Below are positions 1 through 63,162 of a DNA stretch of 64,000 nucleotides, one piece after another. How positions within the stretch are numbered: position 1 is the stretch's first letter; each line of letters starts with the position of its first letter. The position numbers and the translations under genes are program-made. The stretch covers positions 2,728,001 through 2,792,000 of the forward strand of contig NW_027361801.1 of NCBI RefSeq assembly GCF_039654945.1, in the 5' to 3' direction. The notes beneath the pieces are model-generated. The model saw nothing but the letters and a program-made list of their open reading frames with translations. It was not told the origin of the DNA and did not search any database. The stretch comes from Dendrobates tinctorius. Taxonomy: Eukaryota.

Positions 1-1302
1 CATGGAACCCCCGCCTACCCGGTGCCCCAGGTAGTGGACCTCGCGCATGCCTATCTGGCACTTCCCCGGCTTGATGGTCAGGCCTGCCTGGTGAAGACGC
101 TTGAGCACCTCCTGGAGGTGCTGAAGGTGTTCCTCCCAGGTGGAACTGAAGACGGCAATATCGTCTAAGTACGCCACTGCGTACTCCTCCAGTCCCCGAA
201 GCAGGTGGTTGACCATCCGCTGGAAAGTGGCAGGGGCATTCTTCATGCCGAAGGGCATGACCGTGGACTCGTACAGTCCAAAGGGGGTGATAAAGGCGGA
301 TTTCTCCTGCGCCTCAGGGCTCAGGGGAATCTGCCAGTATCCCCGACTCAAATCCATGATGGATATGTAGTTGGCGTTTGTCAACCGCTCGAGCAGATCC
401 TCGATGCGCGGCATCGGGTGGGCATCAGAGGTTGTGATGGCGTTGAGCCCCCTGTAGTCCACGCAGAACCGGGTGGTTCGATCCTTTTTAGGCACGAGGA
501 CTACAGGTGAAGCCCACGCACCTTTTGACCGTCGAATCACTCCCAGCCTTAACATCTCATCGATCTCTTGGCGCATGACTTGTTGCACCGTTTCAGAGAT
601 CCGATAAGGTGTTCGCCGTAATGGGGCATGATTCCCGGTGTCCACCTCATGAACCGCTAACTCCGTCCTCCCAGGACGGTTGGTGAACACGGGCCGGAAG
701 AGTTCCAGGGTGGCCATCAACTGCAACCGCTGGGACACGGTGAGCGAACCACTTATCTCCATCTCCTCAATGGACCCATTGGCCTTGGCCTGGGCCAGCA
801 TGTCCAGGAGGGAATCTTCCTCCCCATCCTCTGGCAGATTGCAGACCGGTAGGATGCAAGCTTCACGTTCGTAGTGCGCCTTCAGCATGTTGACGTGAAA
901 GGCCTTGCGCCTACCCCGAGCATGGTCAAGCGTGACCACGTAGGTGACCGGGTTGAGCTGTTGGTGGACGACGTACGGGCCTTCCCAGGCTGCCTGAAGC
1001 TTATCCGTTGGTACCGGGACCAACACCCACACCTTTTGACCCACCTGGTAGGTCCGCTCCCGGGCGTTCTGGTCGTACCAGCGCTTCTGGTCAGCCTGAG
1101 CCTGCGTCATGTTGTCATGCACCAACTGCGTCAAGGTCTGCATCTTGTCACGGAAGCGCATGACATAATCCACGATGGACACTTCTGTGGGGTTTGGCTC
1201 ATCTTCCCAGGATTCTCTTATCAACCCAAGGGGTCCCCGGACTCGCCTGCCATACAGGAGCTCGAAGGGGGAGAACCCGGTCGAAGCCTGCGGAACTTCT
1301 CT
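1..1302 (-). pseudogene. In-frame continuation of pol after the stop: integrase C-terminus and reverse transcriptase
   Basis: Manual translation past the TAG gives REVPQASTGFSPFELLYGR...WEGPY...WASPVVLVPKKDRTTRFCVDYRGLN...MPFGMKNAPATFQR...VAYLDDIAVFS, open to the window edge. Confidence 0.9.
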
Positions 1303-4300
1303 CTAAGCGAACAGCAGGTGTGGGAGGTACCGCTCCCAGTCGCGCCCTTGGGTCTCAACCAGTATGCGGAGCATCTGTTTGAGGGTACCGTTGAAACGTT
1401 CACACAAACCGTTAGTCTGTGGGTGATACGGACTCGATACCAGCTGCGACACCTGCATTTTCTCACAGAGAGCCTCCATTAGGCGAGACATGAATTGGGG
1501 CCCTTGATCGGTAAGCATCTCCCTGGGAAATCCTACTCTCGAAAAGATGGTCACCAGTGCGTCAGCCACCTTATCTGCCCTGGTTGAAGACAGAGCTACT
1601 GCCTCTGGGTACCGGGTAGCGTAGTCTACCACGGTGAGAATGTATCGCTTTCCGGAGCTGCTGGGGACGGACAGCGGTCCTACAATGTCCACCGCGATTC
1701 TCTGGAAAGGCTCCTCTATCACCGGCAAAGGAATAAGGGGAGCCTTAAGAGCAGGCCCCGCCTTACCCACTTTTTGACAGGTGGCACAGGAGCGGCAGTA
1801 GTGTGTTACATCTGTCCCCATCTTGGGCCAATAGAAGTGTTGAGACAGCCGTGCCTTTGTTTTGCTGATCCCCAAGTGTCCAGCGAGTGGAATCTCATGG
1901 GCAATCCGCAACAACTCAGTTCTGAACTGATAGGGGACGACCAGCTGTCTTTCCCTCAACCACTCCTTTTTAGGATCTCCGGGTACTGTCTCCCGGTACA
2001 ACCTTCCTCGTTCCCAGAACACCCTCTCCTTATCAGACTTGGAGGTGGGCGTCTCGGCGAGACCTCTCAATTTCTCCAGGCTGGCATCTGAGTGCAGAGC
2101 AGCCTGGAACTCCATGCTGGAGGCTGCCAGAAGTGACGTCAGGGTCCCCTCTTTACTGGGACCCTCTGGAACCGGCTCTGGGTTCACCTCTGGTTCAGTC
2201 TCTCCTGTAGCAGCAGAGGGTCCAGAAGACAGTGCGTTACCTGCGATCTGGGCACTCTGACTGCGTGTGACAGCTGCTATGTATGCTGTCTCCCTGGGGA
2301 TTTCTGCAGACCCACCAGCTGGTGCTGCCCTGGGCTCTACCTCCCCATCCACCCCCAACACTTCAGGAGCAGTGCTACTTATGGGCCAGTTACCTTCCTC
2401 GGTGGCACTGGTCAGCTGCATGGCATTACCTTCCTCATGGTCCCCATGCACCTCCCCATTTCCTTGAGCACCGTTGCTTACTCCTGCCAGGGGTTCCTCA
2501 GCCGTCTCACTCCGCAGAGTGACGGGGCTGAGCACTTCGGTACCTGTGGACACATCTACCGCTTCAAAGAAAGGGTTAACGGGTTCAGTCGGCACAGATA
2601 CATCAACATCATCATCATCCTTCCTAGGAGAAGAATGGTTATCAGTTTGCTTTGGTACATTCACATCAGCATCAGCATCGTACCTGGGGAAAGAATGGTT
2701 GTTAGTTGCATCATTACTCATCAAGGCATTAGCAGGTAACACATTCAGTTTCCCATCATCCACATCATCAGGGTTAACGTTACCCTTATTATCAGTTTGG
2801 GGAAGGGTGTCAGGGACATAGTATGCAACCATCCTCCCCAAGTCAGTCCCCAATAAAACATCAGTGGGCAAATTTTCAGACACTCCCACCTCCCTCAACC
2901 CGCTCCCGGCACCCCAGTCAAGAAAAACTCGTGCCACTGGCAAGGGACAACGGGTGCCTCCAATCCCGGTGACAGTCAGGGTTTTCCCCTCAACAAACTC
3001 TTCAGGGGCCGCCAGTCCAGGACGGATGAGGGTTCGTTCAGCCCCGGTGTCCTTGAGGCCTGTAGCAAGACGGGCCCCCACCTGAACAGGTTGAACGTTG
3101 TCGTCAGCCCTCCCAACCACACCTCCCACCAAAAGAACAGAGGCATTGGGCCCGGGGGCCTTGGCTGGGGGGTTCTTCGGCCTGTTCGGACAGGTGTAAA
3201 AGAAGTGACCAGGCCGCTGGCAGTGGTGACACAGGCGACTGTCAGTAGCCGGCCTGTTGTTGGCAACAGGGACAGGGCCTCCGGAGGGACGGCTAGCTGG
3301 GGCATTGGGGTTGGTTGCTGGCTTACCCCCTTTCCAGCTGGTGGCGACTGGCCTCCGCGTCTCGGGCTTCCGGTTGGCCTCGTGGTTGTCGGCGATCTGC
3401 GCCGCTTTGTCCGCGTTCGTTGGTTCGCGGTCCAGGATGAACTGTCGGACCTCAGCTGGGCAGAGATGCAGGAACTGGTCTTTGATCATCAGGTCCCGTA
3501 GCTGCTCAAAGGTTTCAACGGACAGTCCATGGATCCACTGGTCAAAGTGGGTCCTGAGTCCTTGCACCACATCACTGTAGCTATCGTGTGGGCCACGTTG
3601 GAGGTGTCGGAACTTCTTTCGGTATACCTCAGGTGTCAGCCGGTATTTGGCGATCAGCGCCTGCTTTATGGCGTCATAGTCATCATCGGCTTCTGGCGGA
3701 AGAGAAGCAAATGCCTCCAGGGCTTTGCCTTTTAGCCCTGGGGTCAAGTACCTTGCCCATTGGTCTCTAGGCAGCTGGTACTGTCTGCAGGCTTTCTCAA
3801 AGGCTCGCAGAAATGTGTCCAAGTCCCCGTCCTTTTCCATCACGGGAAAATGCTCTGGCCGGGGTTTAGGAGTCTGGACGCTGCTGGGCTCACGGCTTCG
3901 GGCTGTGAGGGCATTCCCACCCCGCTGGAGTACCTCCAGTTCATGGGCCCTCTGCGCCTGGCGCTCGGCTCTCTCAGCCTCAGCTTGGCGCTCAGCTCTC
4001 TCCGCCTGGCGCTCGGCTCGCTGCTCTGCTCTCTCTCGAGCTTGCTGGATCAGCCTCACCCGCCCATCACTGTCTTCGGCGGGGAGTTCGTCCAAGGCCA
4101 TTTGCAGATAGGGGTCCACCCCGTTCTGGTTGAATGTGGGGCCAGCGCTCAGGAGTGGAGCCTCTGCTGCAGCCCCATTGCAACTTGGGCCAACTTCTGC
4201 GCTCGCTGGATTCTGGTCGTTGTCCAGCTGCACTAGAGCCGCGATCATTTGGGCTCTGTTTTTGTTCGTGGCGTCAAGGCCTTGGTACGTGCATAACGCA

Positions 4301-4362
4301 GCAAGAACTTCCTTTGTCTGCCGGGTGTACCAAGGTTCTCCTTTTGCCGCCATGGTTGCCAA
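1303..4362 (-). CDS. Gag-protease-integrase polyprotein (1019 aa), ended by a premature TAG in the integrase region
   Basis: ORF track. SCAN-like capsid segment (YRKKFR...DLMIKDQFL...AAQIADNH), zinc knuckle, DTGA, AHEIPLAGHLG..CRSCATC, catalytic VDIV/TDQG/LCER. Confidence 0.9.
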   Translation of the reverse strand: MATMAAKGEPWYTRQTKEVLAALCTYQGLDATNKNRAQMIAALVQLDNDQNPASAEVGPSCNGAAAEAPLLSAGPTFNQNGVDPYLQMALDELPAEDSDGRVRLIQQARERAEQRAERQAERAERQAEAERAERQAQRAHELEVLQRGGNALTARSREPSSVQTPKPRPEHFPVMEKDGDLDTFLRAFEKACRQYQLPRDQWARYLTPGLKGKALEAFASLPPEADDDYDAIKQALIAKYRLTPEVYRKKFRHLQRGPHDSYSDVVQGLRTHFDQWIHGLSVETFEQLRDLMIKDQFLHLCPAEVRQFILDREPTNADKAAQIADNHEANRKPETRRPVATSWKGGKPATNPNAPASRPSGGPVPVANNRPATDSRLCHHCQRPGHFFYTCPNRPKNPPAKAPGPNASVLLVGGVVGRADDNVQPVQVGARLATGLKDTGAERTLIRPGLAAPEEFVEGKTLTVTGIGGTRCPLPVARVFLDWGAGSGLREVGVSENLPTDVLLGTDLGRMVAYYVPDTLPQTDNKGNVNPDDVDDGKLNVLPANALMSNDATNNHSFPRYDADADVNVPKQTDNHSSPRKDDDDVDVSVPTEPVNPFFEAVDVSTGTEVLSPVTLRSETAEEPLAGVSNGAQGNGEVHGDHEEGNAMQLTSATEEGNWPISSTAPEVLGVDGEVEPRAAPAGGSAEIPRETAYIAAVTRSQSAQIAGNALSSGPSAATGETEPEVNPEPVPEGPSKEGTLTSLLAASSMEFQAALHSDASLEKLRGLAETPTSKSDKERVFWERGRLYRETVPGDPKKEWLRERQLVVPYQFRTELLRIAHEIPLAGHLGISKTKARLSQHFYWPKMGTDVTHYCRSCATCQKVGKAGPALKAPLIPLPVIEEPFQRIAVDIVGPLSVPSSSGKRYILTVVDYATRYPEAVALSSTRADKVADALVTIFSRVGFPREMLTDQGPQFMSRLMEALCEKMQVSQLVSSPYHPQTNGLCERFNGTLKQMLRILVETQGRDWERYLPHLLFA

Positions 4363-4549
4363 ATAAAAGATAGAAAAAGAAAAACGAAGAAACGGGAGGG
4401 GGATACTTGCAAGTACACACTAATGTCTCAGGACTAGTAACCACTGAGTCTGTTCTCCAAAACCTATGATGCAGGATTCCCGCAGGAACCGTGCAGGTTT
4501 TTAGTGAGAGGAATGATTGCTCAAACCAAATCACTAATGCTCTAGGATT

Positions 4550-4569
4550 ATCCCACCGCGCTGCCACCA
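4550..4569 (-). promoter_or_regulatory. Primer-binding site complementary to the tRNA-Leu 3' end
   Basis: Plus strand ATCCCACCG(CG)CTGCCACCA matches the vertebrate tRNA-Leu(AAG) 3' end ATCCCACCGCTGCCA-CCA (recalled, not searched) with a 2-nt insertion, 3 nt from the LTR terminus. Confidence 0.8.
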
Positions 4570-4572
4570 ATA

Positions 4573-6111
4573 TGTGACGAACAGCCCACCGCCGTTCGTC
4601 CACTTACGGGCGACACTAACGGGAGTCCCGCTGCCACCAAAACGCGACGGACAGCGGACCCTGTGTCACCACTATGTCACAGTCCCACCACTGACACGGG
4701 TGTATCAGCGGACGGAGGGGCGTGACACAATGCCGGCACACGGCTATCACAGGCGCAGTGGGGCTTATCTTAGTTATCCCAACACTGGCACCATGTGACC
4801 AAAAATATCCAGCAAGCTAATCTCGCTCTACAATTTGCCGCAGGGGGAGTTTAATTTGGATGCCCCACCACTGCTATCAATCTTCCAAGTACTGCGGGGA
4901 TTTATGTATATCCCACTTTCTCAGTTCCACTTTGGAACTCGCAGCTCTCCGGCGCCCCCCTTACCCTCAGGTCAGTCAGGGAACTGCACCTAGGATAATT
5001 AGTCGCCGGACGGGCTGCCTGTTGTGAACCGGCAATTAGGCTTCTGCAGTAAGGGAATTATCAATGCTGTGGCTGAAGCCCCTTACTCAGCAATATAAGA
5101 CCCTTCTAGACTGCCAGCAAGCCGTAATAGCCGTACACAACGCGCTGCCACCAGTCACGGTTACTTAATTCACAGTGTTAAATTAAGAGGGTCCGTGGCA
5201 AACCCCTTGAATTAGTAGCGATTATCTATCAAAGGCGTATAGTTCGATTCTTAGAGCATGGAGACAGATCTAAATAATTTCATTTATTTTCCGAAAGAGG
5301 ACAGTGATTACAGATAAAAGTTGCTATAAAATTGAGACATAAAATATGTACAGTACAGGTATAAAATAAAAGTGGAGAAAACAAAGAGATTACACTCACA
5401 GTTCCATATTGTTCCTTAGGCAGACCATGCGGCTAAGGTGGGTGGAGGCGGAGCTGCACTTCTCCGCTCATTGGGGTCCTTCTAGCACGACGACTTGAGC
5501 TGTTCTGAGCTGGTTTGCCCAGGAAATGCCTTATAGACTTTCCTATGTGACATCACAGAGAGGTGCATTCTGGGTTGATCCCACCTCTCTTATCCAAGTT
5601 ATGTTTTGGCTACAAAACTTAGATTAGCTATAACTTTATGGGAGAAGCTGGTATGGACTCATCAGTGGTATCATGTTTCCCAGCGTAATGAGCCCATCAA
5701 GAAAACATCAAACATCTATGCGATATGACCGTCCATTTGGGCGCAAATCCTATCTCATGTTCTGGACAGGGTAGAACTTCGAAACATACGCGGTCTCGAA
5801 GCTGGGACCGCTCAGGTTACAAAAATATGATTTTCATATCTCTAGGGTATTTGGTTCTTATGGTATAGTCTCTCATAGTTTTATTCGTTTCAAACAAAGA
5901 AGTTTTTCCCGCTCTGAAGAGGAGAGAAGGCAAATGGTGTGAGGAAGATGGTCTAGCTAATTAACATTCCTGCTCTTCCAGAGGAAGTGGCAGGGTTGAT
6001 AAAACCTGGGGGGAAGGAATTCCTACTACTGAGAGTTTACAATGTCCTAGGATGGAGGATTTGTTAGCACATTGCAACAGAAAACATATCTTGCAGACAT
6101 GGTACATCACA
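4573..6111 (-). repeat. 5' LTR of the Gmr1 element (~1.54 kb)
   Basis: TG...CA ends with a short inverted repeat (TGTGAT/GTCACA). Inner end abuts the PBS; outer end coincides with the break in the older Gypsy RT frame. The partner LTR is outside the window. Confidence 0.7.
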
Positions 6112-8427
6112 ATATTAACTTAATTATAAGCCCCTCTTGGTTTAGAAAACCATTTAGCCGCAGTAAACTGATTAGATAGGTCGCGGATGAGTGGAAGTGG
6201 GTAAGTTATTCATGACCATAGTATTGTTTAATTCGCGAAAATTGAGGCAAGGACGAGACCACCATCTTTCTTTTTAACAAAGAAATACCCAGCAGTTACA
6301 GCGGGGAGGAAGAATCTATATGACCCTTTCATGAAACTTTTCTTTACATATTCTTTCATGGTGGTAAGTTCAGGTCCCGACAAATATACAGGTGAGCTAT
6401 AGGCAATTTGGCATTAGGCATAAAATTAATAGGACAATCATAAGGACGATGAGGAGGTAGCATCTCTGCCTCTTTTTCCGAGAACACATCTTTGAAGTCT
6501 TTCAGATATTCCGGCAGATCCTCCAGACTATGTGAGCAAATTTGTACAGAACTAAGACATTTCTTATGACAATCGGGACTACACTTAACAATATCCTTCT
6601 GACACCAATCAATAACAGGATTGTAAATACTCAGGCATGGAAACCCAAATGCCAACATAGCAGGTAAATTATCCAAAACATAGGAGGAAATGGATTCAGA
6701 GTTAAGAGTTCCCACTCTTAGTGTGAATTCCACCGTTACCAGCTGGACAGAGTTCTGGAGGGAGCAACGGTGTCCTGTCAAAGGCGACTATTTGAATGGG
6801 TCTCTCTAATCTAACGGTCTCTAATCCTAGTTTAACAACCAGTCCTCAATCAATGAAGATGGCTAGAGGTCCACAGTCAATGAAAGCAAAAGCAGATTCT
6901 TGAAACATAGTTCCACGTTTAACAGCACTTTATCAGAGGAGTAAAAAGGTAACTGGAAGTCGACCTCCTCAACAATCAATCAGACTTGGGCATTTCCTGT
7001 CGCCTGTTTGTTTGAGGGCGTATCGTGCACTCCTAACGAAAATGCCCAGCGTACCCACAGTAAAAGCAGAGTCCAACATTGCGCTAACACCTCTTGATGA
7101 CATGAGAGCTGGCAGCTCCAACTTCCATCAGTTCCGCCTCATGTAAGTTGACAGATTAGAGGAGAATAACCGAACCACCCTGACTCTTATGATGCCTCTC
7201 CCGAATTCTGCGATTCATTCGAATAGCCTGGGTCATGGCCTCCTCCAAGGGACAAGGTGGAGTATGAAGAGCATCCTTGGAAGTATCTGAAAGGCCTCTG
7301 GGAAACTGGCACTTGAGAGGAGAGCTTCATCATTCCACAGCACTTCCATGGATCATTGCTGGAACTCGGTACAGTAATCCTCAGCGTTGTGGTCCCCCTG
7401 TGTCAGGGTCATAATCTTTGCCTCCACAACCTGGATCCTTTCAGGGTTGTCATAGATTAACCCTAACCCATTAAAAAAGATGTGAGCCAAAGACCGTTCT
7501 GGGTCTTGTGGGGACAAAGAAAAAAAGTCTGTGGTCCCCCTGGCAGTAACTGACATGATTATTCCCACCAGCTGGGACTCGTCCCTTGAAAACAGGAGTA
7601 ACAGGGTAAAAAATAATCTACAGTTCTCCCTGATCTTTCTCCACTGAAAATTTATATCAGTGAGAGCAACTACTGGTTCGGGAGAGACCAACTGTACATC
7701 AGAAAGTACTGCCGTCATAGCTACTGTCAGCAATGGAGGATTCTGAGTAGCAGCCATCGCTAAAAAACTGACCCAGCAGCTGAGACTGGTAAGATCCTGA
7801 ACCACCTGGGTCTGATTCATCACCTAATCATAAAGTGTGCGAATTGGTTCCATAATGGTGGGAGAAAGAAAAAAGTATTATGTACAATTGTAATGTGATG
7901 CTATGGCTACTCAGTGTGACAATAGTCACTACTCCCGGACTTGCAGTGATGTAGGGTAGTCAAGATGTCCAGGGTCAGTACCAAGAGGGCTCGTAATAGA
8001 CAAAGGGTAAAGACAATAGGTCACAGTACGAGATCAGAGTATCAGGTAGGTAGCCGATCAAGACGAAAGGGTAAATCAAATGGAAGGTCAAAGGTAAATC
8101 TAAGGTCGGCAACAGAGATCAGAATTCAACACAGAGCAAACACACACACCACTTGAGCAAAGCTACAATTTCCGATAATCTGACAATTGACAAACTGTTA
8201 AATAGCCCTGAAATCATCCAGAACGCATGACCCCTGGGGGAGATCCCATATACCCAGCCAGATAGGTCAGCTGACCTGTCATTCACAATACTCTCACCTC
8301 TGCCTTAGATTGGGAGCTAGAACTGTCACTCTCAATCCTGACAGCTCAGCAATCCCTCAAACCCATAGGGCGGTAGAGCGGTCATTCATAGCATCCATAG
8401 GATACTGTGAGTAATGGAATTGTGACA
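6112..8427 (-). mobile_element. Older degenerate Ty3/Gypsy element (5' LTR ~7889-8427, gag, zinc knuckle, PR, start of RT)
   Basis: Gag remnant 7353-7823, CFYCGYAGHFR*EC knuckle near 7030-7070, FIDCG protease near 6870-6890, LPPHRPYDCPI and FFVKKKDGG RT motifs. Many stops and frameshifts. LTR ends in TGTGACA at 8421-8427. Confidence 0.85.
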
Positions 8428-11439: not shown

Positions 11440-12890
11440 TTTTACATGCAAGTCTGAGGTATGTAGAGGCTGCTCACACTGACGTCCACCATGTTTATCT
11501 GATCTAATACTCAAGATACCAGGGTTGTTGAGGTAAGAAGAGGCTGCTCACACTGCTGTCCACCTTGTTTCTGATCTAATACTGGAGATACCAGGGGTGC
11601 TGAGGTAAGAAGAGGCTGCTCACACTGCCGTCCTCTCTGTCTATGTGATCTAATACAGGAGATACCAGGGGTGCTGAGGTAAGAAGAGGCTGCTCACAGA
11701 GCAGTCCTCCCTGTCTATCTGGTCTAATACTGGAGATACCAGGAGTGTTGAGGTAAGCAGATGCTGCTCTCACTGTAGTCCACCCTGTCTGTCTGATCTA
11801 ATACTGGAGATTGCAGGGTGCTGAGGTAAGATGTGGCTGCTCACACTGCTATCCTCCCTGTCTATCTGATTTAATACTGGATATACAGGAGTGCTGAAGT
11901 AAGAATAGGCTGCTAACACTGCTGTCCACCCTGTCTATCTGATCTAATACTGAAGATACCAGAGGTGTTGAGGTAAGAAGAGGCTGCTGACACTGCTGTC
12001 CTCCCTGTCAATCTCATCTAATACTGGAGATACCAGGAGTGCTAAGGTAAGAAGAGGTTGCTCAAACTGCTGTCCCCCTTGTCTATCTGATCTAAAACTG
12101 GAGATTACAGGGTGCTGAGGTAAGATGAGGCTGCTCACACTGCTATCCTGTCTATCTGATTTAATACTGGAGATGCAAGGGTGCTGAGGTAAGAAAAGGC
12201 TGCTCACACTGCTGTACACCCTGTCTATCTGAAATAATACTGGCAACACTGGACTGGCCATCTGGCAATTCTGACAAATGCCAGAAGGGCCTGTTTGGTC
12301 GTGAGCCACCTTGTCTGCTACTCTGCTAACAGAATCGGTGTTCTCAAGACACCCATATTGTTAAGAGTTGTGACGGAGCACAAAGTCGCTGACTCCGTCA
12401 CTTACCCCGTCAGGCTGCGGGTATCATTAGAAATATTGGTCTTGTAGTAAATCTTGCTTTCCCTCCATCCAGGGTAATATTATTAATATATATCCTCATC
12501 TCATACTTGGGGACGAGGACAACATGGGCCTGTGTGATTACAAATGCCAGGGCTGAATTTCAGGCCCAGTCCGTACCTGAACACTGGAGATACCAGGGGT
12601 GCTGAGGTAAGAAGAGTGTGCTCACACTGCTGTCCACACTGTCTATATGATCTAATACTGGAGATACCAGGGGTGCTGAGGTAAGAAGAGGCTGCTCACA
12701 CTGCTGTCCACCTTGTCTATCTGATCTAAAACTGGAGATTACAGGGTGCTGAGGTAAGATGACACTGCTGTCTACCCTATCTTTCTGATCTAATACTGGA
12801 GATAGCAGGAGTGCTGAGGTAAGAAGAGACTGCTCACACTGCTGTCCAGTCTGTCTGTTATACTAATGGAGATAACAGGGGTGTTGTGGT
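11440..12890. repeat. 74-bp tandem minisatellite (~15 units), interrupted by a MITE
   Basis: Unit ~ctgatctaatactggagataccaggggtgctgaggtaagaagaggctgctcacactgctgtccaccctgtctat; period 74 measured between 11571 and 11645. Confidence 0.9.
12244..12579. mobile_element. hAT-type MITE (336 bp) inserted in the minisatellite
   Basis: 8-bp TSD aatactgg (12236-43) / aacactgg (12580-87); imperfect TIRs CA..GGACTGG / CCAGTCC..TG. Confidence 0.75.
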
Positions 12891-14263: not shown

Positions 14264-17254
14264 TTATAGATAAGGATTGGGCTGTTGGATTTCAAGCATC
14301 CCCTTTTGTTTTCAAGAGAGATAAAGTTTTGTTACAGGTGTCCTACAAGGCCTGCCTCTTTTCTAGCCATTCAGAACACATGCATGCTTGGCTAAACTGA
14401 TAATGCTTTTGTACGAGAGGTCAGATGGGCTAGTTTTTTGACCAATGAAAGTTTATTCCTGGTAGTTATTTAAAGCATTGACTATGTATGTAAGGTTCGC
14501 CAGATCAAATTTCGGTGGACTTGCTGATCAACTAATGTGCTTCTCAGATGTCAAGGGAAAAAAAAAAGAAAATTTCCAGTAGAAGATTTTTGCATTTCTG
14601 GTTCTTTGTTCTTGTGGGAGACAGGCCACTTTCAGAGAGGAGTCTGGCAGTGACTTCTCATTTCTCCATTAAAATTTGTGCATGCTTGGCTGACAGATAT
14701 CCATTGTGTATGGTCACCTTTATTGTTGTAGAAATGTAAGTTTGCTGAAAGTGGAAGATATCTGATTGTTGAGAGTTCCTCTATGGCTTCTTGAAACCCG
14801 TATAACCCTGAGGTAGACCGAATAAAAAAATGAGCCTCAGGGGCAAACACCCGAGAACACTGGATATCAATTTCATATATCATTGGCTCAATTAACAAAT
14901 GTTTCCTACAAGATCATCAGGTGTTTTTGCAACAATTTCTCTTCTAGAATGATCTAAAACCTACCCCAGCCTTTTTAATGAGGGTGTGATAGCTTCTCGT
15001 TAATTCCTCTCGGGGGGTGTGGTTGCAGAAACATAGTTTCTTGTCAGTCTGTTTGCCACCCAATGCCTGTCTAACCTGCCCGGCAACATTTCCCTTGGCC
15101 GAGAAGAAACCAAATAAAATCGCTGTAGATCTCCAGCATACTCTGTGTAGATAGGATGTGCTCCATGCAGAGAAATAGGGAAATGCTGCAATCGTCATTG
15201 ACGACTTTTGACTTTCTGTGCTGTTGCACATTAGTAGAATTAGTGATATACATCTGGCAGAAAAAACCCCCATTTCATATTAACATTTTGGATCCATTTT
15301 ACAGCACATATTTTGGCACTAAGATGACATTCAACAAGGGGTGGCCATATTATTGGTGCCTCAAGAGGGCCCGAGAGGTAAGGGGGTCCATTTCCACCTC
15401 CAAAGCTGGAGAAATTTTGCATTATGATGAGCTATTGGACTATAATGGACCCATATACTGTTCTTGTACAGGGGCCCTTTTCCACCAGTGCATTCAGCAG
15501 GGTACTCCACTGGTTGCACAACGACGTTCCATCAGTGTGACCTATCTACATGTAGTCAAATAGTTCCGACATTGCGTACACACCAGATGGAAAATGAGAG
15601 GAAAATATCTACAGCTAATCTTTGGGTGCCGATTTTGCTGACAAATTTAAGCAGAACTGAATTACAAAATTACACTGTGTACTACAGTATCAGAATTGTG
15701 GGTGAGATATTAAAAAACAGTACCAGGTGGTAGGCTAAATGGAAGTTTCCAGGACTTTGATATGAACGGCCTATCCATACAAAAAGTGGTGGTCTAACGC
15801 TTGGAACCCCCGTCGATCAGCTGTTTGCATCCCCAATCATTGTGTAATTTCCATTCTCTGGTACTACAGTTGGGCTCATATTGAAGGAAATGGGTTAACA
15901 GTCTTTTGTAGTGTCATCACTGGGCAATTAATGTTTGTACATGGACTTAAGCTGGCCAAACCCATCAGATAGATGTATGAAGAATCCCCCACACACGTGT
16001 ACATTTATCTCAGGCCTTTAAGACCTACGCTGACCATATACATGATAGCTGCAAAGATTAGTTTTGCAGACAACTTTCTCTACCAACTCCCCTATGCACA
16101 TGTATGTTTGGCTTGGCCGAGCACTCTGGTGTTTGTTTTAGGACTTGTTGCAATGGATGAGGAATATGGTGGTTCAGAGTCCATGCTGCCCAAGGTTCAA
16201 AGATACAATCACACACGAAGGTGAAGGTGATTTTCTTAGGACTCATGCAGACGATCATATTTTTGGTCCTAGTGCGAATCGACAAACGTTTGGATCTCAA
16301 TCAGACCAATGTTATTTTATGGGGCGGTGCACATGTTGGATCTTCTCTCTGGACCAAGTCTACTACAAGAATAAAATTGCAGCATGCACAATTTGCATCA
16401 GTAAATCGGATCACACTCACCAATGCAAGTCAATGGGGCTGTAAAAAAAAATCGGACTGTATTTGAATGCCATTCGAGGGCAGTTTAATTTTCACAGACT
16501 GACAGAATGGAGACTTTTTTTTCATCTTCTTCACATCTGAGAAAATAGGATCATACTTTGATCAAGCTCTAAACAGACACCATTAGCAGCGACTCACCTC
16601 CCTTGAAAACAAGAGGATCAACCATAGAAAATGCAACGGCCTGATTCTTCTCTCCCCCAACATTATTTGTTGGGGAAGATTTATACAAATCAGATGATCA
16701 GTCGGTTCCATTGAAACCGGCAGGCTCAGCCGATTTTCACCCGGTGTGTGTGGGGACCGAGGCACTAATCTTGCTGACCAGACCACCAAAAATGAGGTTA
16801 TTCATCAGGCTCCAAGTCAATATCACTGATATGTCGCCAGATACACACTGACGCCATCACCAACAGATACTATATGATTCACCAAGAAAGTAATCTCCTG
16901 TGAATGAGGATATTAACAAACCTGATATCTGACAATCACTGCTAATAATACCCTGCAGTGACCGGAATTAGGTGGATGTCTGCAGCAGGAATGTTTGAGG
17001 GATAAAATGAACTATGGAGGTAAGTGAGTATTTTGCACACCTGCGTCATGACTGTGCACTCCAGATCACATCAGACAGTCCAGGCCGGTGATACTTTGAT
17101 GCAATGCTTTCATTAGAGGTTTCAGTCAAGTAGTACAATGTTATCTGCAGAACAGCCAGAAAATACAATAGTGATTATTAAAAAGTGAGCAATTAAAGAA
17201 AAACTTAGCAAAATCCATTTTTCAATAAGTATAGTGCCAAGGGGGCGGGGAAAG

Positions 17255-17895: not shown

Positions 17896-18553
17896 GAAAG
17901 TCTCTCTTTTTAGTAGTCATGCACCGCCCCTGAGGTTCTGCATAAGGTATAATGCATACATTTTAGTATGGTATTCCTATACTTGCACTCAAATTATCTC
18001 TCCTCCAAAAGGAAGAACGCTGGATTTCTTGTGCCACCCATAGAAGGTAGTTCCCCTATAAGGCAACGTCCGACCCCTTAACAGTCCACAAGGAAAAACA
18101 GTCCTCCCTAAATCTCCATCAAAAATCTCTATCCCGGGCCAACCAGTACAGTACTCTACACTGACAAGGAGCAAGAACCCCAAACAGCTGTCGGTAGATG
18201 GATGTCTTTTCAATTTTTAGTACACCCTATATGGAAAGGTCAGATATCAACCTATTGGTGATGATGTCACTCGAAAGAGGCAGGTTTCTTCCTCTTGGAG
18301 GAGCGCTACCTTGCATACTGTTTTCTAGGGAGCATTCCACTGGTTTAGACTAGCAGAACCAGTACCCCCCTAAACCAAAGAAAACATGACATATACAAAT
18401 AAAATCATCTTTCCTATGAAACATACTTGGTTCTGTAAAACTCTGGGTGGCTACTACCATAGTGACCATTACAGCTTCTCCCACAGGACTCCTTAATATG
18501 CCTAGTACTGCAATTTTAGGATGCTCCGTTCAGAAGGGTAGTTCTTGCAACGT

Positions 18554-19084
18554 GTCAGGATCGCTGGTGAGTCGCTACATGATCGCTGGTGAGCTGTCAA
18601 ACAGACAGCTTCACCAGCTATCAGGACCAGCGACGCCGAGCGCACGTCGTTGCTGTGTACTTTAGTTACCAGAGCGCTGATGCAGGGAGCTGGTAACTAG
18701 GGTACACATCGGGTTTCTAAGGGACGTGCGTCGCTTAGAAACCCGATGTGTACCTTAGTTACCAGCCCCCTGCATCAGCACGCTGGTAACTAAGGTACAC
18801 AGAGGGTTTCTAAGCACAGCGCCGTGCTTAGAAACCCTGCGTTTACCTTAGTTACCAGCTGATCACTGGTCTCCCGCCTGTCACACGCAGCGATGCGTGC
18901 TGGCCAGCGGGAGACCAGCGACCAAAAAAATGTCCAGGGCTTTCCAACAGCGATACTGGCAGGGGGGGCCGGTCGCTGATCGCTGTCACACACAGCGATC
19001 TCGCTGGTGAGATTGCTGTTACGTCACAAAACTTGTGACTCTGCAGTGATCTCGCTAGCGAGATCACTATGTGTGACGGGGCCC
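18554..19084. mobile_element. PIF/Harbinger-type MITE, same family as 13682-14263, inverted, one end truncated
   Basis: Reverse-complement similarity to the 13.7-kb copy; ends TGTGACGGGGCCC-TTA. Confidence 0.8.
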
Positions 19085-32122: not shown

Positions 32123-32410
32123 GGGCCCCGTCACACATAGCGACTCACCAGCGATCCCGACAACGATATGACCTTGTCAGGATCGCTGGCGAGTCGCTAC
32201 CTGATCGCTGGTGAGCTGCCAAACAGACAGCTTCACCAGCGATCAGCACCAGCGACGCCGAGCGCGCACGACGCTGTGTACGTTAGTTACCAGCGCGCTG
32301 ATGCAGGGAGCTGGTAACTAGGGTACACATCGGGTTTCTAAGCGGCATGTCACTTAGAAACCCGATGTGTACCTTGGTTAACTAAGGTACACAGAGGGTT
32401 TCTAAGCACC
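32123..32410. mobile_element. Truncated Harbinger-type MITE (family of the 13.7-kb and 18.6-kb copies)
   Basis: TTA followed by GGGCCCCGTCACACATAG; shared internal motifs gttaccagcgcgctgatgcagggagctggtaac. Confidence 0.75.
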
Positions 32411-41579: not shown

Positions 41580-59075
<17,496 letters not shown>

Positions 59076-59934
59076 TTCTTAAGTAATTTTTCCAACGCCC
59101 ACCTGAAAACCAAAGAGATATAAATATGGATCGAATACAATCTACCCTACTGAAAAAGTGACCAATATACATGAACGGCCAGCAGTAGCCAATCTGATGG
59201 GGCTGCGTTACGGTCACGTTCCTGGAGCCACAATATTTTTATCGTGGACGTAGCGGTATGACGGGCTTGATTTTTGCTGGCGGATTTTTACTAGCTCTTT
59301 GTGGGGAGAAATAGAAATCTACACCCCGGTTATTGAGATACCACATATATAGCATTAATTACCTTTTATTAATTTTATACACTACCATATAGTTTTAATA
59401 TTTTACCATATGTCTTTTGTTGGTAGAAAATACTTTGTCTGGGGAAAAAAATATATATCGCTTCTCTGTGACCATCTGAGTGGTATAAATTTTTCAATTT
59501 TCCATGGATGGAGCTGTGAACACTTACGTTTATATGAAAAGGTTAAGTGGTCCCATTTTTGGACTTTTTGATCACAAGAATTCTTCAACTCTTACAAGTT
59601 TAAAGGGAAGCTGTCAGCTGTTTTGGCCGCTATAAGATGCGGCCGCCGCCTTTCAGGGCTTATCTACAGTGTTCTATAATGCTGTGTATCTGCCCCCAGT
59701 CCGACCTGAAAGATGAGAAAAACAAGTTTTATTATACTCACCTGGGGGGACGGTCCGGTCCGATGGTGTCGCAGGTCCGGGTCCGGCGCCTCCCATCTTC
59801 TTGCAATGACGCCCTCCTGCTTGCTACATGGCTCCCCGACATCGCACTCCTGCGCAGGTGTACTGATCTGCCCTGTTGAGGGCAGGCACAGCAAATTCCT
59901 GCAGTGCGCAGGCGCCAGGAAAGATCAGAGGCCA

Positions 59935-62797
59935 CACACGTGCAGTATAGGTCCGCCCACTGGACTCCCACACGCACAGTAAGTCCTCCTACTGGACTCC
60001 CACACACGCACAGTAGGTCCGCCCACTGGACTCCCACACACGCCGCGTAGGTCCGCCCACTGGGCTTCCACACAAGCCGCGTAGGTCCGCCCACTGGGCT
60101 TCCACAAACGCGCACAGTAGGTCCGCCCACTGGACTCCCACACGCACAGTAGGCCTGCCCACTGGACTACCACACATGCGCCCAGCATAGGTCCGCCCAC
60201 TGGACTCCCACACGCGCCCAGCATAGGTCCGCCCACTGGACTCCCACACGCGCCCAGCATAGGTCCGCCCACTGGACTCCCACACGCGCGCAGCATAGGT
60301 CCGCCCACTGGACTCCCACACGCGCGCAGCATAGGTCCGCCCACTGGACTCCCACACGCGCGCAGCATAGGTCCGCCCACTGGACTCCCACACGCGCCCA
60401 GCATAGGTCCGCCCACTGGACTCCCACACGCGCCCAGCATAGGTCCGCCCACTGGACTCCCACATGCGCCCAGCATAGGTCCGCCCACTGGACTCCCACA
60501 CGCGCCCAGCATAGGTCCGCCTACTGGACTCCCACACGCGCCCAGCATAGGTCCGCCCACTGGACTCCCACACGCACAGTAAGTCCTTCTACTGGACTCC
60601 CACACACGCACAGTAGGTCCGCCCACTGGACTCCCACACACGCACAGTAGGTCCGCCCACTGGGCTTCCACACGCACAGTAGGTCCGCCCACTGGACTCC
60701 CACACGCGCAGCATAGGTCCGCCCACTGGACTCCCACACGCACAGTAAGTCCTCCTACTGGACTCCCACACACGCCCAGCATAGGTCCGCCCACTGGACT
60801 CCCACACACGCCACGTAGGTCCGCCCACTGGACTCCCACACACGCGCACAGTAGGTCCACCCACTGGACTCCCACACATGCGCGCAGCATAGGTCCGCCC
60901 ACTGGACTCCCACACGCGCCCAGCATAGGTCCGCCCACTGGACTCCCACACGCGCCCAGCATAGGTCCGCCCACTGGACTCCCACACGCGCCCAGCATAG
61001 GTCCGCCCACTGGACTCCCACACGCGCCCAGCATAGGTCCGCCCACTGGACTCCCACACGCACAGTAAGTCCTTCTACTGGACTCCCACACACGCACAGT
61101 AGGTCCGCCCACTGGACTCCCACACACGCCGCGTAGGTCCGCCCACTGGGCTTCCACACGCACAGTAGGTCCGCCCACTGGACTCCCACACGCGCAGCAT
61201 AGGTCCGCCCACTGGACTCCCACACGCACAGTAAGTCCTCCTACTGGACTCCCACACACGCCCAGCATAGGTCCGCCCACTGGACTCCCACACACGCCGC
61301 GTCGGTCCGCCCACTGGACTCCCACACACGCCGCGTCGGTCAGCCCACTGGACTCCCACACACGCGCGCAGCATAGGTCCGCCCACTGGACTCCCACACA
61401 CGCGCGCAGCATAGGTCCGCCCACTGGACTCCCACACACGCGCGCAGCATAGGTCCGCCCACTGGACTCCCACACACGCGCGCCGCATAGGTCCGCCCAC
61501 TGGACTCCCACACGCGCGCAGCATAGGTCCGCCCACTGGACTCCCACACGCGCGCAGCATAGGTCCGCCCACTGGACTCCCACACACGCGCGCAGCATAG
61601 GTCCGCCCACTGGACTCCCACACACGCGCGCAGCATAGGTCCGCCCACTGGACTCCCACACACGCGCGCAGCATAGGTCCGCCCACTGGACTCCCACACA
61701 CGCGCGCAGCATAGGTCCGCCCACTGGACTCCCACACACGCGCGCCGCATAGGTCCGCCCACTGGACTCCCACACGCGCGCAGCATAGGTCCGCCCACTG
61801 GGCTCCCACACGCGCGCAGCATAGGTCCGCCCACTGGGCTCCCACACGCGCGCAGCATAGGTCCGCCCACTGGACTCCCACACGCGCGCAGTAGGTCCGC
61901 CCACTGGACTCACACACACGCACAGTAGGTCCGCCCACTGGACTCACACACACGCACAGTAGGTCCGCCCACTGGACTCACACACGCACAGTAGGTCCGC
62001 CCACTGGACTCACACACGCACAGTAGGTCCGCCCACTGGACACACACACGCACAGTAGGTCCGCCCACTGGACTCACACACACGCACAGCATAGGTCCGC
62101 CCACTGGGCTCCCAAACGCGCACAGTAGGTCCTCCCACTGGACTCCCACACGCGCACAGTAGGTCCGCCTACTGGACTCCCACACGCGCACAGTAGGTCC
62201 GCCCACTGGACTCCCACACGCGCACAGTAGGTCCGCCCACTGGACTCCCACACGCGCACAGTAGGTCCGCCCACTGGACTCCCACACGCGCACAGTAGGT
62301 CCGACCACTGGACTCCCACACGCGCACAGTAGGTCCGACCACTGGACTCCCACACGCGCACAGTAGGTCCGACCACTGGACTCCCACACGCGCACAGTAG
62401 GTCCGACCACTGGACTCCCACACGCGCACAGTAGGTCCGACCACTGGACTCCCACACGCGCACAGTAGGTCCGCCTACTGGACTCCCACACGCGCACAGT
62501 AGGTCCGCCTACTGGACTCCCACACGCGCACAGTAGGTCCGCCCACTGGACTCCCACACGCGCACAGTAGGTCCGACCACTGGACTCCCACACGCGCACA
62601 GTAGGTCCGACCACTGGACTCCCACACGCGCACAGTAGGTCCGACCACTGGACTCCCACACGCGCACAGTAGGTCCGCCTACTGGACTCCCACACGCGCA
62701 CAGTAGGTCCGCCTACTGGACTCCCACACGCGCACAGTAGGTCCGCCCACTGGACTCCCACACGCGCACAGTAGGTCCGACCACTGGACTCCCACAT
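59935..62797. repeat. GC-rich 30-34-bp minisatellite (~85 units) in the probable NSDHL 5'-UTR intron
   Basis: Unit aggtccgcccactggactcccacacgcgcacagt with blockwise variants. Confidence 0.96.
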
Positions 62798-63162
62798 ACA
62801 AACCTCAAGGATTCCAATGAATGTAATGCAAGTTTTACTGAAACTATTCCCACAAGAAATGTGCATCACCTCCTCCCGCTCTATAACACGCTGCCTGCAG
62901 ATCATAGAACATTTTCATCGTGACTGGTTGCCATAATGAAAGTAGGAAGGCTATACATAAAATAGTAAGAAACAATCAATGGAGCAATTAGCCAGAGGTC
63001 AAATAATATTACTGATCACATGAATAGGCTACAGAGCCAAAGCCTCATAGTCACCAGCAGAGCGGGAAGCCTGCTTGTCTGTACTGCTGCTTCCACTAGA
63101 CTAGACAGCACTGAGCCTGTGCTGCGGTGCAGGTGCTGGTTGGCACGGCTGCCCTCTCTTAC

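Follow-up and report, generated by a model that had tools for sequence, protein, structure and literature searches.

The left end of the 64-kb stretch of DNA analysed here (the window) raises the question of why one LTR retrotransposon should carry, besides the primer-binding site (PBS) next to its LTR, a whole row of further stretches resembling the complement of the same tRNA-Leu 3' end.

The element and the end of its LTR

Judged from its sequence, the element is a Gmr1-like Ty3/gypsy LTR retrotransposon of a frog, lying on the minus strand. Gmr1-like Ty3/gypsy elements of vertebrates have a SCAN-type capsid and an integrase encoded ahead of the reverse transcriptase (RT), and about 200 copies have been reported in Xenopus tropicalis (PMC4131045). 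The window element resembles them in both respects. Its gag-pol (1-4353, minus strand) has its ATG at 4353 and leaves the window within pol at position 1, and a leader (4549-4354, minus strand) lies between the PBS and this ATG. Pfam recognises a SCAN-type capsid and an integrase in the product of the open reading frame that runs from 4353 to 1303. The capsid match (PF02023, E 9.9e-12) is above the cut-off and gives the element the SCAN-related Gag of the clade, and Integrase_H2C2 and rve are found at residues 806-995. In tblastn searches, P0005, from the full-length Dendropsophus relative, aligns to window positions 4329-2812 and 2292-1. Since its RT-bearing part (residues 589-1351) aligns at 2292-1, downstream of the integrase, RT comes after integrase in the window element, which is the order of the Gmr1-like clade; in full-length relatives the domains follow one another as SCAN, integrase, RT and RNase H. 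The window Gag shares 39-57% identity with proteins from many frogs and has no closer match, so the host is an anuran. An in-frame stop is present in pol at 1305-1303, between integrase and RT, and the alignment with P0005 goes on in the same frame past it. No further LTR copy or solo LTR of the element was found within the 64-kb window, and the 3' LTR and target-site duplication of this copy lie outside it. No tRNA genes were found in the window either.

The 5' LTR has 1539 nt (4573-6111, minus strand); it begins with TGTGATG at 6111 and ends with TCGTCACA at 4573, so that its termini are the inverted TGTGA/TCACA. At the outer edge, 6111, contig depth drops after 6106 and a contig loose end is found at 6112. 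A different repeat lies just outside the LTR, at 6107-6800, with similar depth in organisms A and D (bins 6107-6774). The polyadenylation signal AATAAA is located at 5283-5288 (minus strand), with the R/U5 border about 20 nt downstream, and its context (..TGCTCTAA..) has positional homologues in the Dendropsophus, X. tropicalis, Rhinoderma and Ranitomeya elements.

The inner edge has been placed by means of relatives fetched via their gag proteins, namely from Dendropsophus (L001), X. tropicalis (L002), Rhinoderma (L004), Ranitomeya (L005), Phyllobates (L006), Lithobates (L007), X. laevis (L008) and Rana (L009). The two LTRs are 99-100% identical in six of them (L001, L002, L004, L007, L008 and L009), and in these six verified pairs the LTR ends with ...(C)GT(G/C)ACA, followed by 2-3 nt and then by the PBS. 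For example, the junction in the Dendropsophus and Rhinoderma elements is ...CGTGACA, 3 nt and TGGTGGCAGCGGTGGGAT, and the same junction is present in Phyllobates, where no LTR pair was found. The Dendropsophus element has the full cis structure of an LTR retrotransposon, with two TG..CA-ended LTRs, a PBS after the 5' LTR and a 5-bp target-site duplication (GTCCT). An exact 18-mer PBS, the complement of the 3' end of tRNA-Leu(AAG) including its CCA, occurs in the Dendropsophus, Rhinoderma, Ranitomeya and Phyllobates elements (the last two without a checkable LTR pair). The assignment of this 18-mer to tRNA-Leu(AAG), and its one-base difference from Leu(UAG), were confirmed against published human probe and tRF sequences.

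In the window, the present LTR terminus GTCACA (4578-4573) and a 3-nt spacer TAT (4572-4570; both together 4570-4578, minus strand) are laid out as in L001, L004, L006, L007 and L009. The working PBS follows at 4550-4569 (minus strand; Smith-Waterman score 30), and directly after it stands the leader sequence TAGAGCATTAGTG, common to L002, L003 and the Ranitomeya element. This PBS is the best tRNA-Leu motif of the stretch. With human tRNA-Leu probes as the reference, its match to tRNA-Leu is not uninterrupted: the complement of the tRNA-Leu(AAG) 18-mer is split by an insertion of 2 nt. The insertion looks fixed in the family, as no well-supported deletion variant occurs in X1 among the rows listed. 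In the two ranid elements (L007:3750-3790 and L009:3430-3470) the PBS also departs from tRNA-Leu by inserted bases, TGGCTGGCAGCGTAGCGGGAT, and the insertion of the window element is at the same place. Both ranid elements were inserted recently, because their LTRs are 100% identical to each other.

The preliminary description had put the motifs of 4550-5158 in "U5/leader". Verified LTR pairs in the relatives put the PBS at 4569-4550 and the end of the LTR at 4573, so that the array would lie wholly within the 3' part of U5, next to the PBS, and the leader would have no part in it. In every relative with a checkable pair, all the sequence upstream of the LTR end occurs in both LTRs. Contig depth in organism A, which as a count of contigs is a rough guide and a poor measure, steps down near 4570 and not at 5158. 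This placement draws on homology to the relatives and on that rough depth. In the predicted fold, the end of U5 forms a long hairpin, which takes in the LTR terminus as well as the first part of the PBS (z = -3.6). In the Phyllobates element, GCAGCCACCA (L006:5880-5895), located in the leader some 100 nt beyond the PBS, is a near-complement of the PBS start and pairs with it in the minimum free energy (MFE) fold.

PBS-like units in U5 and their counterparts in other frogs

The motifs previously listed are all present, and they are far more frequent than in shuffled sequence. A Smith-Waterman scan of the element-sense strand of 4540-5170 with the complement of the 18-nt tRNA-Leu(AAG) 3' end gave 5 matches with a score of at least 20 and 7 with at least 16. 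In 500 dinucleotide shuffles the means were 0.024 (maximum 1) and 0.46 (maximum 3), respectively. The antisense strand of the same stretch gave no match, and only 3 matches of at least 20 were found in the rest of the window (about 127 kb, both strands). The 11-mer CGCTGCCACCA has exactly three exact occurrences in the window, all within the array. It had also been noticed that several motifs have an LTR-terminus motif of their own. In fact, the pattern GT[GC][AG]C, 0-4 nt, TGGTG is found five times in the stretch and three times elsewhere in the window by regular expression. The spacers are non-repetitive, as had been stated: they range from 10 to 90 nt and are unrelated, self-comparison of the array revealed no similarity between them beyond the motifs, and Tandem Repeats Finder (TRF) detected no tandem array in 4550-5158, which separates the array from a simple tandem repeat or satellite.

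All units lie on the minus strand. Farthest from the PBS, the PBS-like cassette remnant TGATAGCAGTGGTGGGG (4863-4879; score 17) is without a clear terminus motif. The cassette at 4776-4800 (score 21) consists of GGTCACA followed directly by an 18-nt PBS-like unit ending in GGGAT; its position 4782 is C in most organism A contigs, one step nearer to the tRNA complement. Next come the remnant GTGTCAGTGGTGGGA (4683-4697; score 20), which is predicted to fold back on a partial complement upstream of it, and a cassette with a decayed PBS, GTGACA, TAG and TGGTGACACAGGG (4659-4680), recovered as a regular-expression hit. The cassette nearest to the PBS is GTCGCG, TTT and TGGTGGCAGCGGGA (4626-4648; score 24), whose PBS start is exact over 12 nt. 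Two of the motifs listed earlier are present, although weak. The one at 4584 (GGCGGTGGGC, 4584-4593; score 16) resembles the 3' half of the PBS and forms the loop of the U5-terminal hairpin, with the stem GACGAAC/GTTCGTC; the one at 4910 falls in a conserved U5 block (4896-5060, minus strand) common to Ranitomeya and organism D, a related species. This block is 74-85% identical to two Ranitomeya copies, and its bin has the highest depth in run X9 of organism D. Three upstream units have CAGTG, and CAGCG is kept in the two units nearest to the PBS. Such a gradient is expected from CpG decay if new units arise next to the PBS.

A counterpart of this array has been found in Ranitomeya. Two members of this LTR family lie on the L005 contig, with 74-85% identity to the window over 5060-4896, and these have compact ladders of 5 and 3 units placed after the conserved block. 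Each unit consists of a terminus, (G/C)TGACA, 3-4 nt and a PBS-like unit that nearly always ends in ...GGGAT. It is here that plus-strand strong-stop synthesis comes to a halt on the primer tRNA, after 18 nt and at the modified A58. One of the two copies has the perfect 18-mer as its final unit, with the leader after it. Hardly any unit continues into the tRNA T-loop sequence TCGAACC. Because the units end at the 18-nt limit of the tRNA copy and almost none enters the T-loop sequence, they would thus be copies of the junction between U5 end and PBS as made by RT, and not pieces of tRNA genes. Capture of a tRNA gene or of a SINE has been ruled out on the same boundary. The U5 of the first Ranitomeya copy is interrupted by 295 bp (L005:33834-34128) that are 94% identical to their own reverse complement, a perfect-hairpin-like insertion and perhaps a MITE.

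The number of units varies. The units of the window ladder cannot be aligned one to one with those of Ranitomeya, which means that the ladders have changed since the two lineages separated. In contigs of organisms A and C, 4583-4627 is skipped or replaced by 7-10 other letters (contig joints). In contigs of organism D, 4582 is joined directly to 4897, with the array absent and the PBS and the conserved block kept. The Anomaloglossus relative, which has the most similar leader, is without a ladder, and similar decayed cassettes are found near the U5 end of the Lithobates element, a ranid copy with LTRs 100% identical.

A conserved motif in distal U5

At 5141-5158 (minus strand) GTGAC stands before TGGTGGCAGCGCG, which is complementary to the final 11 nt of tRNA-Leu(AAG), and this motif is conserved across frogs. 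The 9-mer TGGTGGCAG occurs inside eight of nine anuran Gmr1-like LTRs, with one mismatch in the ninth (k-mer survey), and is the only 9-mer common to eight of the nine, which are otherwise not alignable by BLAST. It is always in sense orientation and 95-330 nt after a polyA-like signal; in the window the motif (5153-5141) is 135 nt after AATAAA. The distance to the LTR end is 118-300 nt, and 581 nt in the window because of the ladder. Both LTRs contain it in the Dendropsophus, X. tropicalis, Rhinoderma and X. laevis elements. The position after TGGTGGCAG varies between C and T and between G and A, as a CpG site does, and the stretch that is conserved is the complement of the 3' acceptor strand together with ACCA. 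This distal motif (5153-5141) stands apart from the ladder. TGGTGGCAG may have been kept as a second place at which the 3' end of tRNA-Leu docks, and it probably still binds tRNA-Leu in such an auxiliary role, with primer capture and alternative initiation among the possible functions. A role as one arm of a conserved helix has been dropped, as the MFE folds of six U5-leader RNAs share no common partner for it.

Second tRNA contacts are known from other retroelements. For example, Ty3 and Drosophila Gypsy have a bipartite or second PBS near the RNA 3' end, which pairs with the anticodon and T stems (PMC1635307). The likeness is that the genomic RNA binds tRNA at one further site in addition to the 5' PBS; the frog U5 motif, in contrast, would pair with the same 3' acceptor end as the PBS itself. 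Another example is that of the retroviral U5 helper motifs, such as the HIV-1 primer activation signal and the avian contact between U5 and the T-loop, which contact the primer tRNA upstream of the PBS and pair with the T arm freed once the tRNA sits on the PBS. These are also short conserved U5 motifs upstream of the PBS, whereas TGGTGGCAG would compete for the acceptor end itself. The conserved 9-mer is a candidate for a new kind of contact with the primer tRNA, in the vertebrate retrotransposon clade from which the SCAN domain arose.

In Ranitomeya imitator the motif has been amplified: the U5 of another Gmr1-like LTR contains about 27 tandem units of 44 bp (L005:15696-16841, minus strand), each with GGTGAG and TGGTGGCAGCG; after them come GTGACA, AAT and a decayed PBS at 15549.

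Origin of the array

The array is probably a ladder of decayed terminus-PBS cassettes, that is, fossils of repeated duplication during reverse transcription, each followed by priming from further downstream, so that the LTR end was pushed outwards. Each cassette would, on balance, once have consisted of a U5 end with the integrase-recognised terminus GTGACA, a 3-nt spacer and an 18-nt tRNA-Leu PBS. Such a process might have run as follows. Plus-strand strong-stop synthesis halts on the primer tRNA after 18 nt, at modified A58, and the DNA made would hold a copy of the U5 end and then of these 18 nt. A template switch or a slip-back at a short homology would occasionally duplicate the segment that comprises ~8 nt at the end of U5, the spacer and the 18 nt copied from the tRNA, leaving tandem cassettes. 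Such a homology is at hand, since the bases immediately ahead of the terminus are often similar to the PBS 3' half. During the next cycle, priming from the downstream PBS would carry the upstream cassette into strong-stop DNA and into both LTRs, and the end would move out by one unit, with the new integrase end supplied by the duplicated terminus. Buried cassettes would then be free to decay through CpG loss, indels and spacer growth. The duplication and the shift in priming are the steps that we infer.

Growth of the LTR by capture of U5-PBS junctions was one of two explanations in the preliminary description, and the comparative data (position, compact units and varying number) favour it. 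The other, i.e., decoy or alternative PBSs matched to several Leu isoacceptors, did not hold up: the AAG-like and UAG-like variants are one CpG-to-TpG transition apart, so that CpG decay makes several isoacceptors unneeded, and most units are truncated or indel-bearing. Self-priming of the Tf1 type has also been rejected, the complement of the motif being absent from the part of the element in the window.

Some observations count against the ladder of fossils. The 2-nt insertion in the window PBS and the deviating PBSs of the ranids are not predicted by the classical correction of the PBS from the tRNA copy. The unrelated spacers of 10-90 nt mean that later insertions must be assumed. Finally, as far as the nine LTRs indicate, the conserved distal motif makes at least one PBS-like site no mere fossil, which speaks against a purely fossil reading. 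A wider proposal, possible but tentative, is that anuran Gmr1-like elements keep TGGTGGCAG under selection as a second site for the tRNA-Leu acceptor end, and that a self-copying U5/PBS junction in addition shifts the LTR boundary between cycles. If true, this would be a natural multi-PBS system linking primer docking, choice of the initiation site and LTR length.

Alternatively, the units might be a working system, in which several cassettes and the distal motif are used in parallel for initiation by tRNA-Leu and the end of the LTR shifts inwards or outwards from cycle to cycle. Five units do keep a terminus-like motif beside the TGGTG start, engineered retroviral vectors with two PBSs reportedly initiate at both, and the distal 9-mer is kept in eight of nine LTRs across frogs whose gag is only 39-57% identical. 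We consider this unlikely, however, as truncation, indels or loss of the CpG affect most of the buried units, and the contig rows listed include no alternative termini. In addition, the distal motif has no adjoining terminus motif in most relatives, so DNA primed there would lack an integrase end.

Ordinary tandem-repeat growth of a U5 segment with a tRNA-binding motif, by slippage or unequal exchange and with decay afterwards, would do without reverse transcription altogether. Tandem repeats are common in the LTRs and UTRs of LTR elements, and the other Ranitomeya Gmr1-like LTR with its array of 44-bp units shows that they can hold TGGTGGCAGCG. This origin nevertheless seems quite improbable for the window array, where the spacers share nothing and TRF reports no array; moreover, the compact Ranitomeya units start at the U5 terminus and end at the 18-nt limit, which slippage has no reason to respect.

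Much weaker is the case for decoys, in which the units would bind 3' tRNA-Leu fragments and so keep them from blocking the real PBS. The units do lie in transcribed U5 and could pair with the 18-nt tRF-3 of tRNA-Leu(AAG), to which they are complementary and which is known from mammals; extra targets in the element's own RNA, though, would more likely draw silencing than relieve it, and with units that decay and one related species without the array, a sponge is very improbable. Chance resemblance in a GC-rich stretch, to which the motifs at 4584 and 4910 might be ascribed since they are weak on their own, is hardly credible for the array, being refuted by the shuffles, by the restriction to a single strand and by the presence of the feature in relatives.

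With regard to the ladder of terminus-PBS cassettes, known systems offer partial likenesses. HIV-1 isolates of the MAL type (subtype A-like) carry a partial PBS duplication, and so are a natural retroelement with an extra partial PBS copy near the real one (PMC3185550). In HIV-1 MAL, however, there is a single 23-nt insertion, downstream of the PBS and in the leader, whereas the frog element has a row of units, each with an LTR-terminus motif, upstream of the PBS and inside the LTR. The engineered two-PBS retroviral vectors of Voronin and Pathak (2003 and 2004) are said to start reverse transcription at either PBS. They would illustrate the step by which an upstream cassette could enter the LTR, although they are laboratory constructs and the frog array is natural, multiple and mostly decayed. 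In the searchable literature, outside which most subscription journals fall, the only duplicated or multiple PBSs found in natural LTR elements were those of HIV-1 MAL and the second PBS of Gypsy and Ty3, and no description was found there of a Gmr1-like PBS, an internal U5 tRNA-Leu motif or terminus-PBS ladders.

The ends of an LTR are commonly regarded as fixed, and the ladder would record lengthening of an LTR at its U5 end through errors of RT and shifts in priming, as a natural counterpart of the two-PBS vector experiments. It is also of significance for annotation, because tools that use the PBS to locate the end of an LTR can be misled by ladders of this kind.

Other repeats are found in the window. 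Two copies of AGCGGTGGGAT, which corresponds to the 3' half of the Leu PBS, are located at 50461-50471 (minus strand) and 51345-51355 (plus strand), inverted and about 875 nt apart, and may be the ends of another element. Satellite-like arrays occur at 59865-62854 (units of 34-38 bp), 52217-52960 (31 bp) and 11454-12865 (about 74 bp). Finally, a 91-nt repeat with internal inverted symmetry is present at 18553-18643 and 32175-32265, its two copies being 95% identical and 13.6 kb apart.
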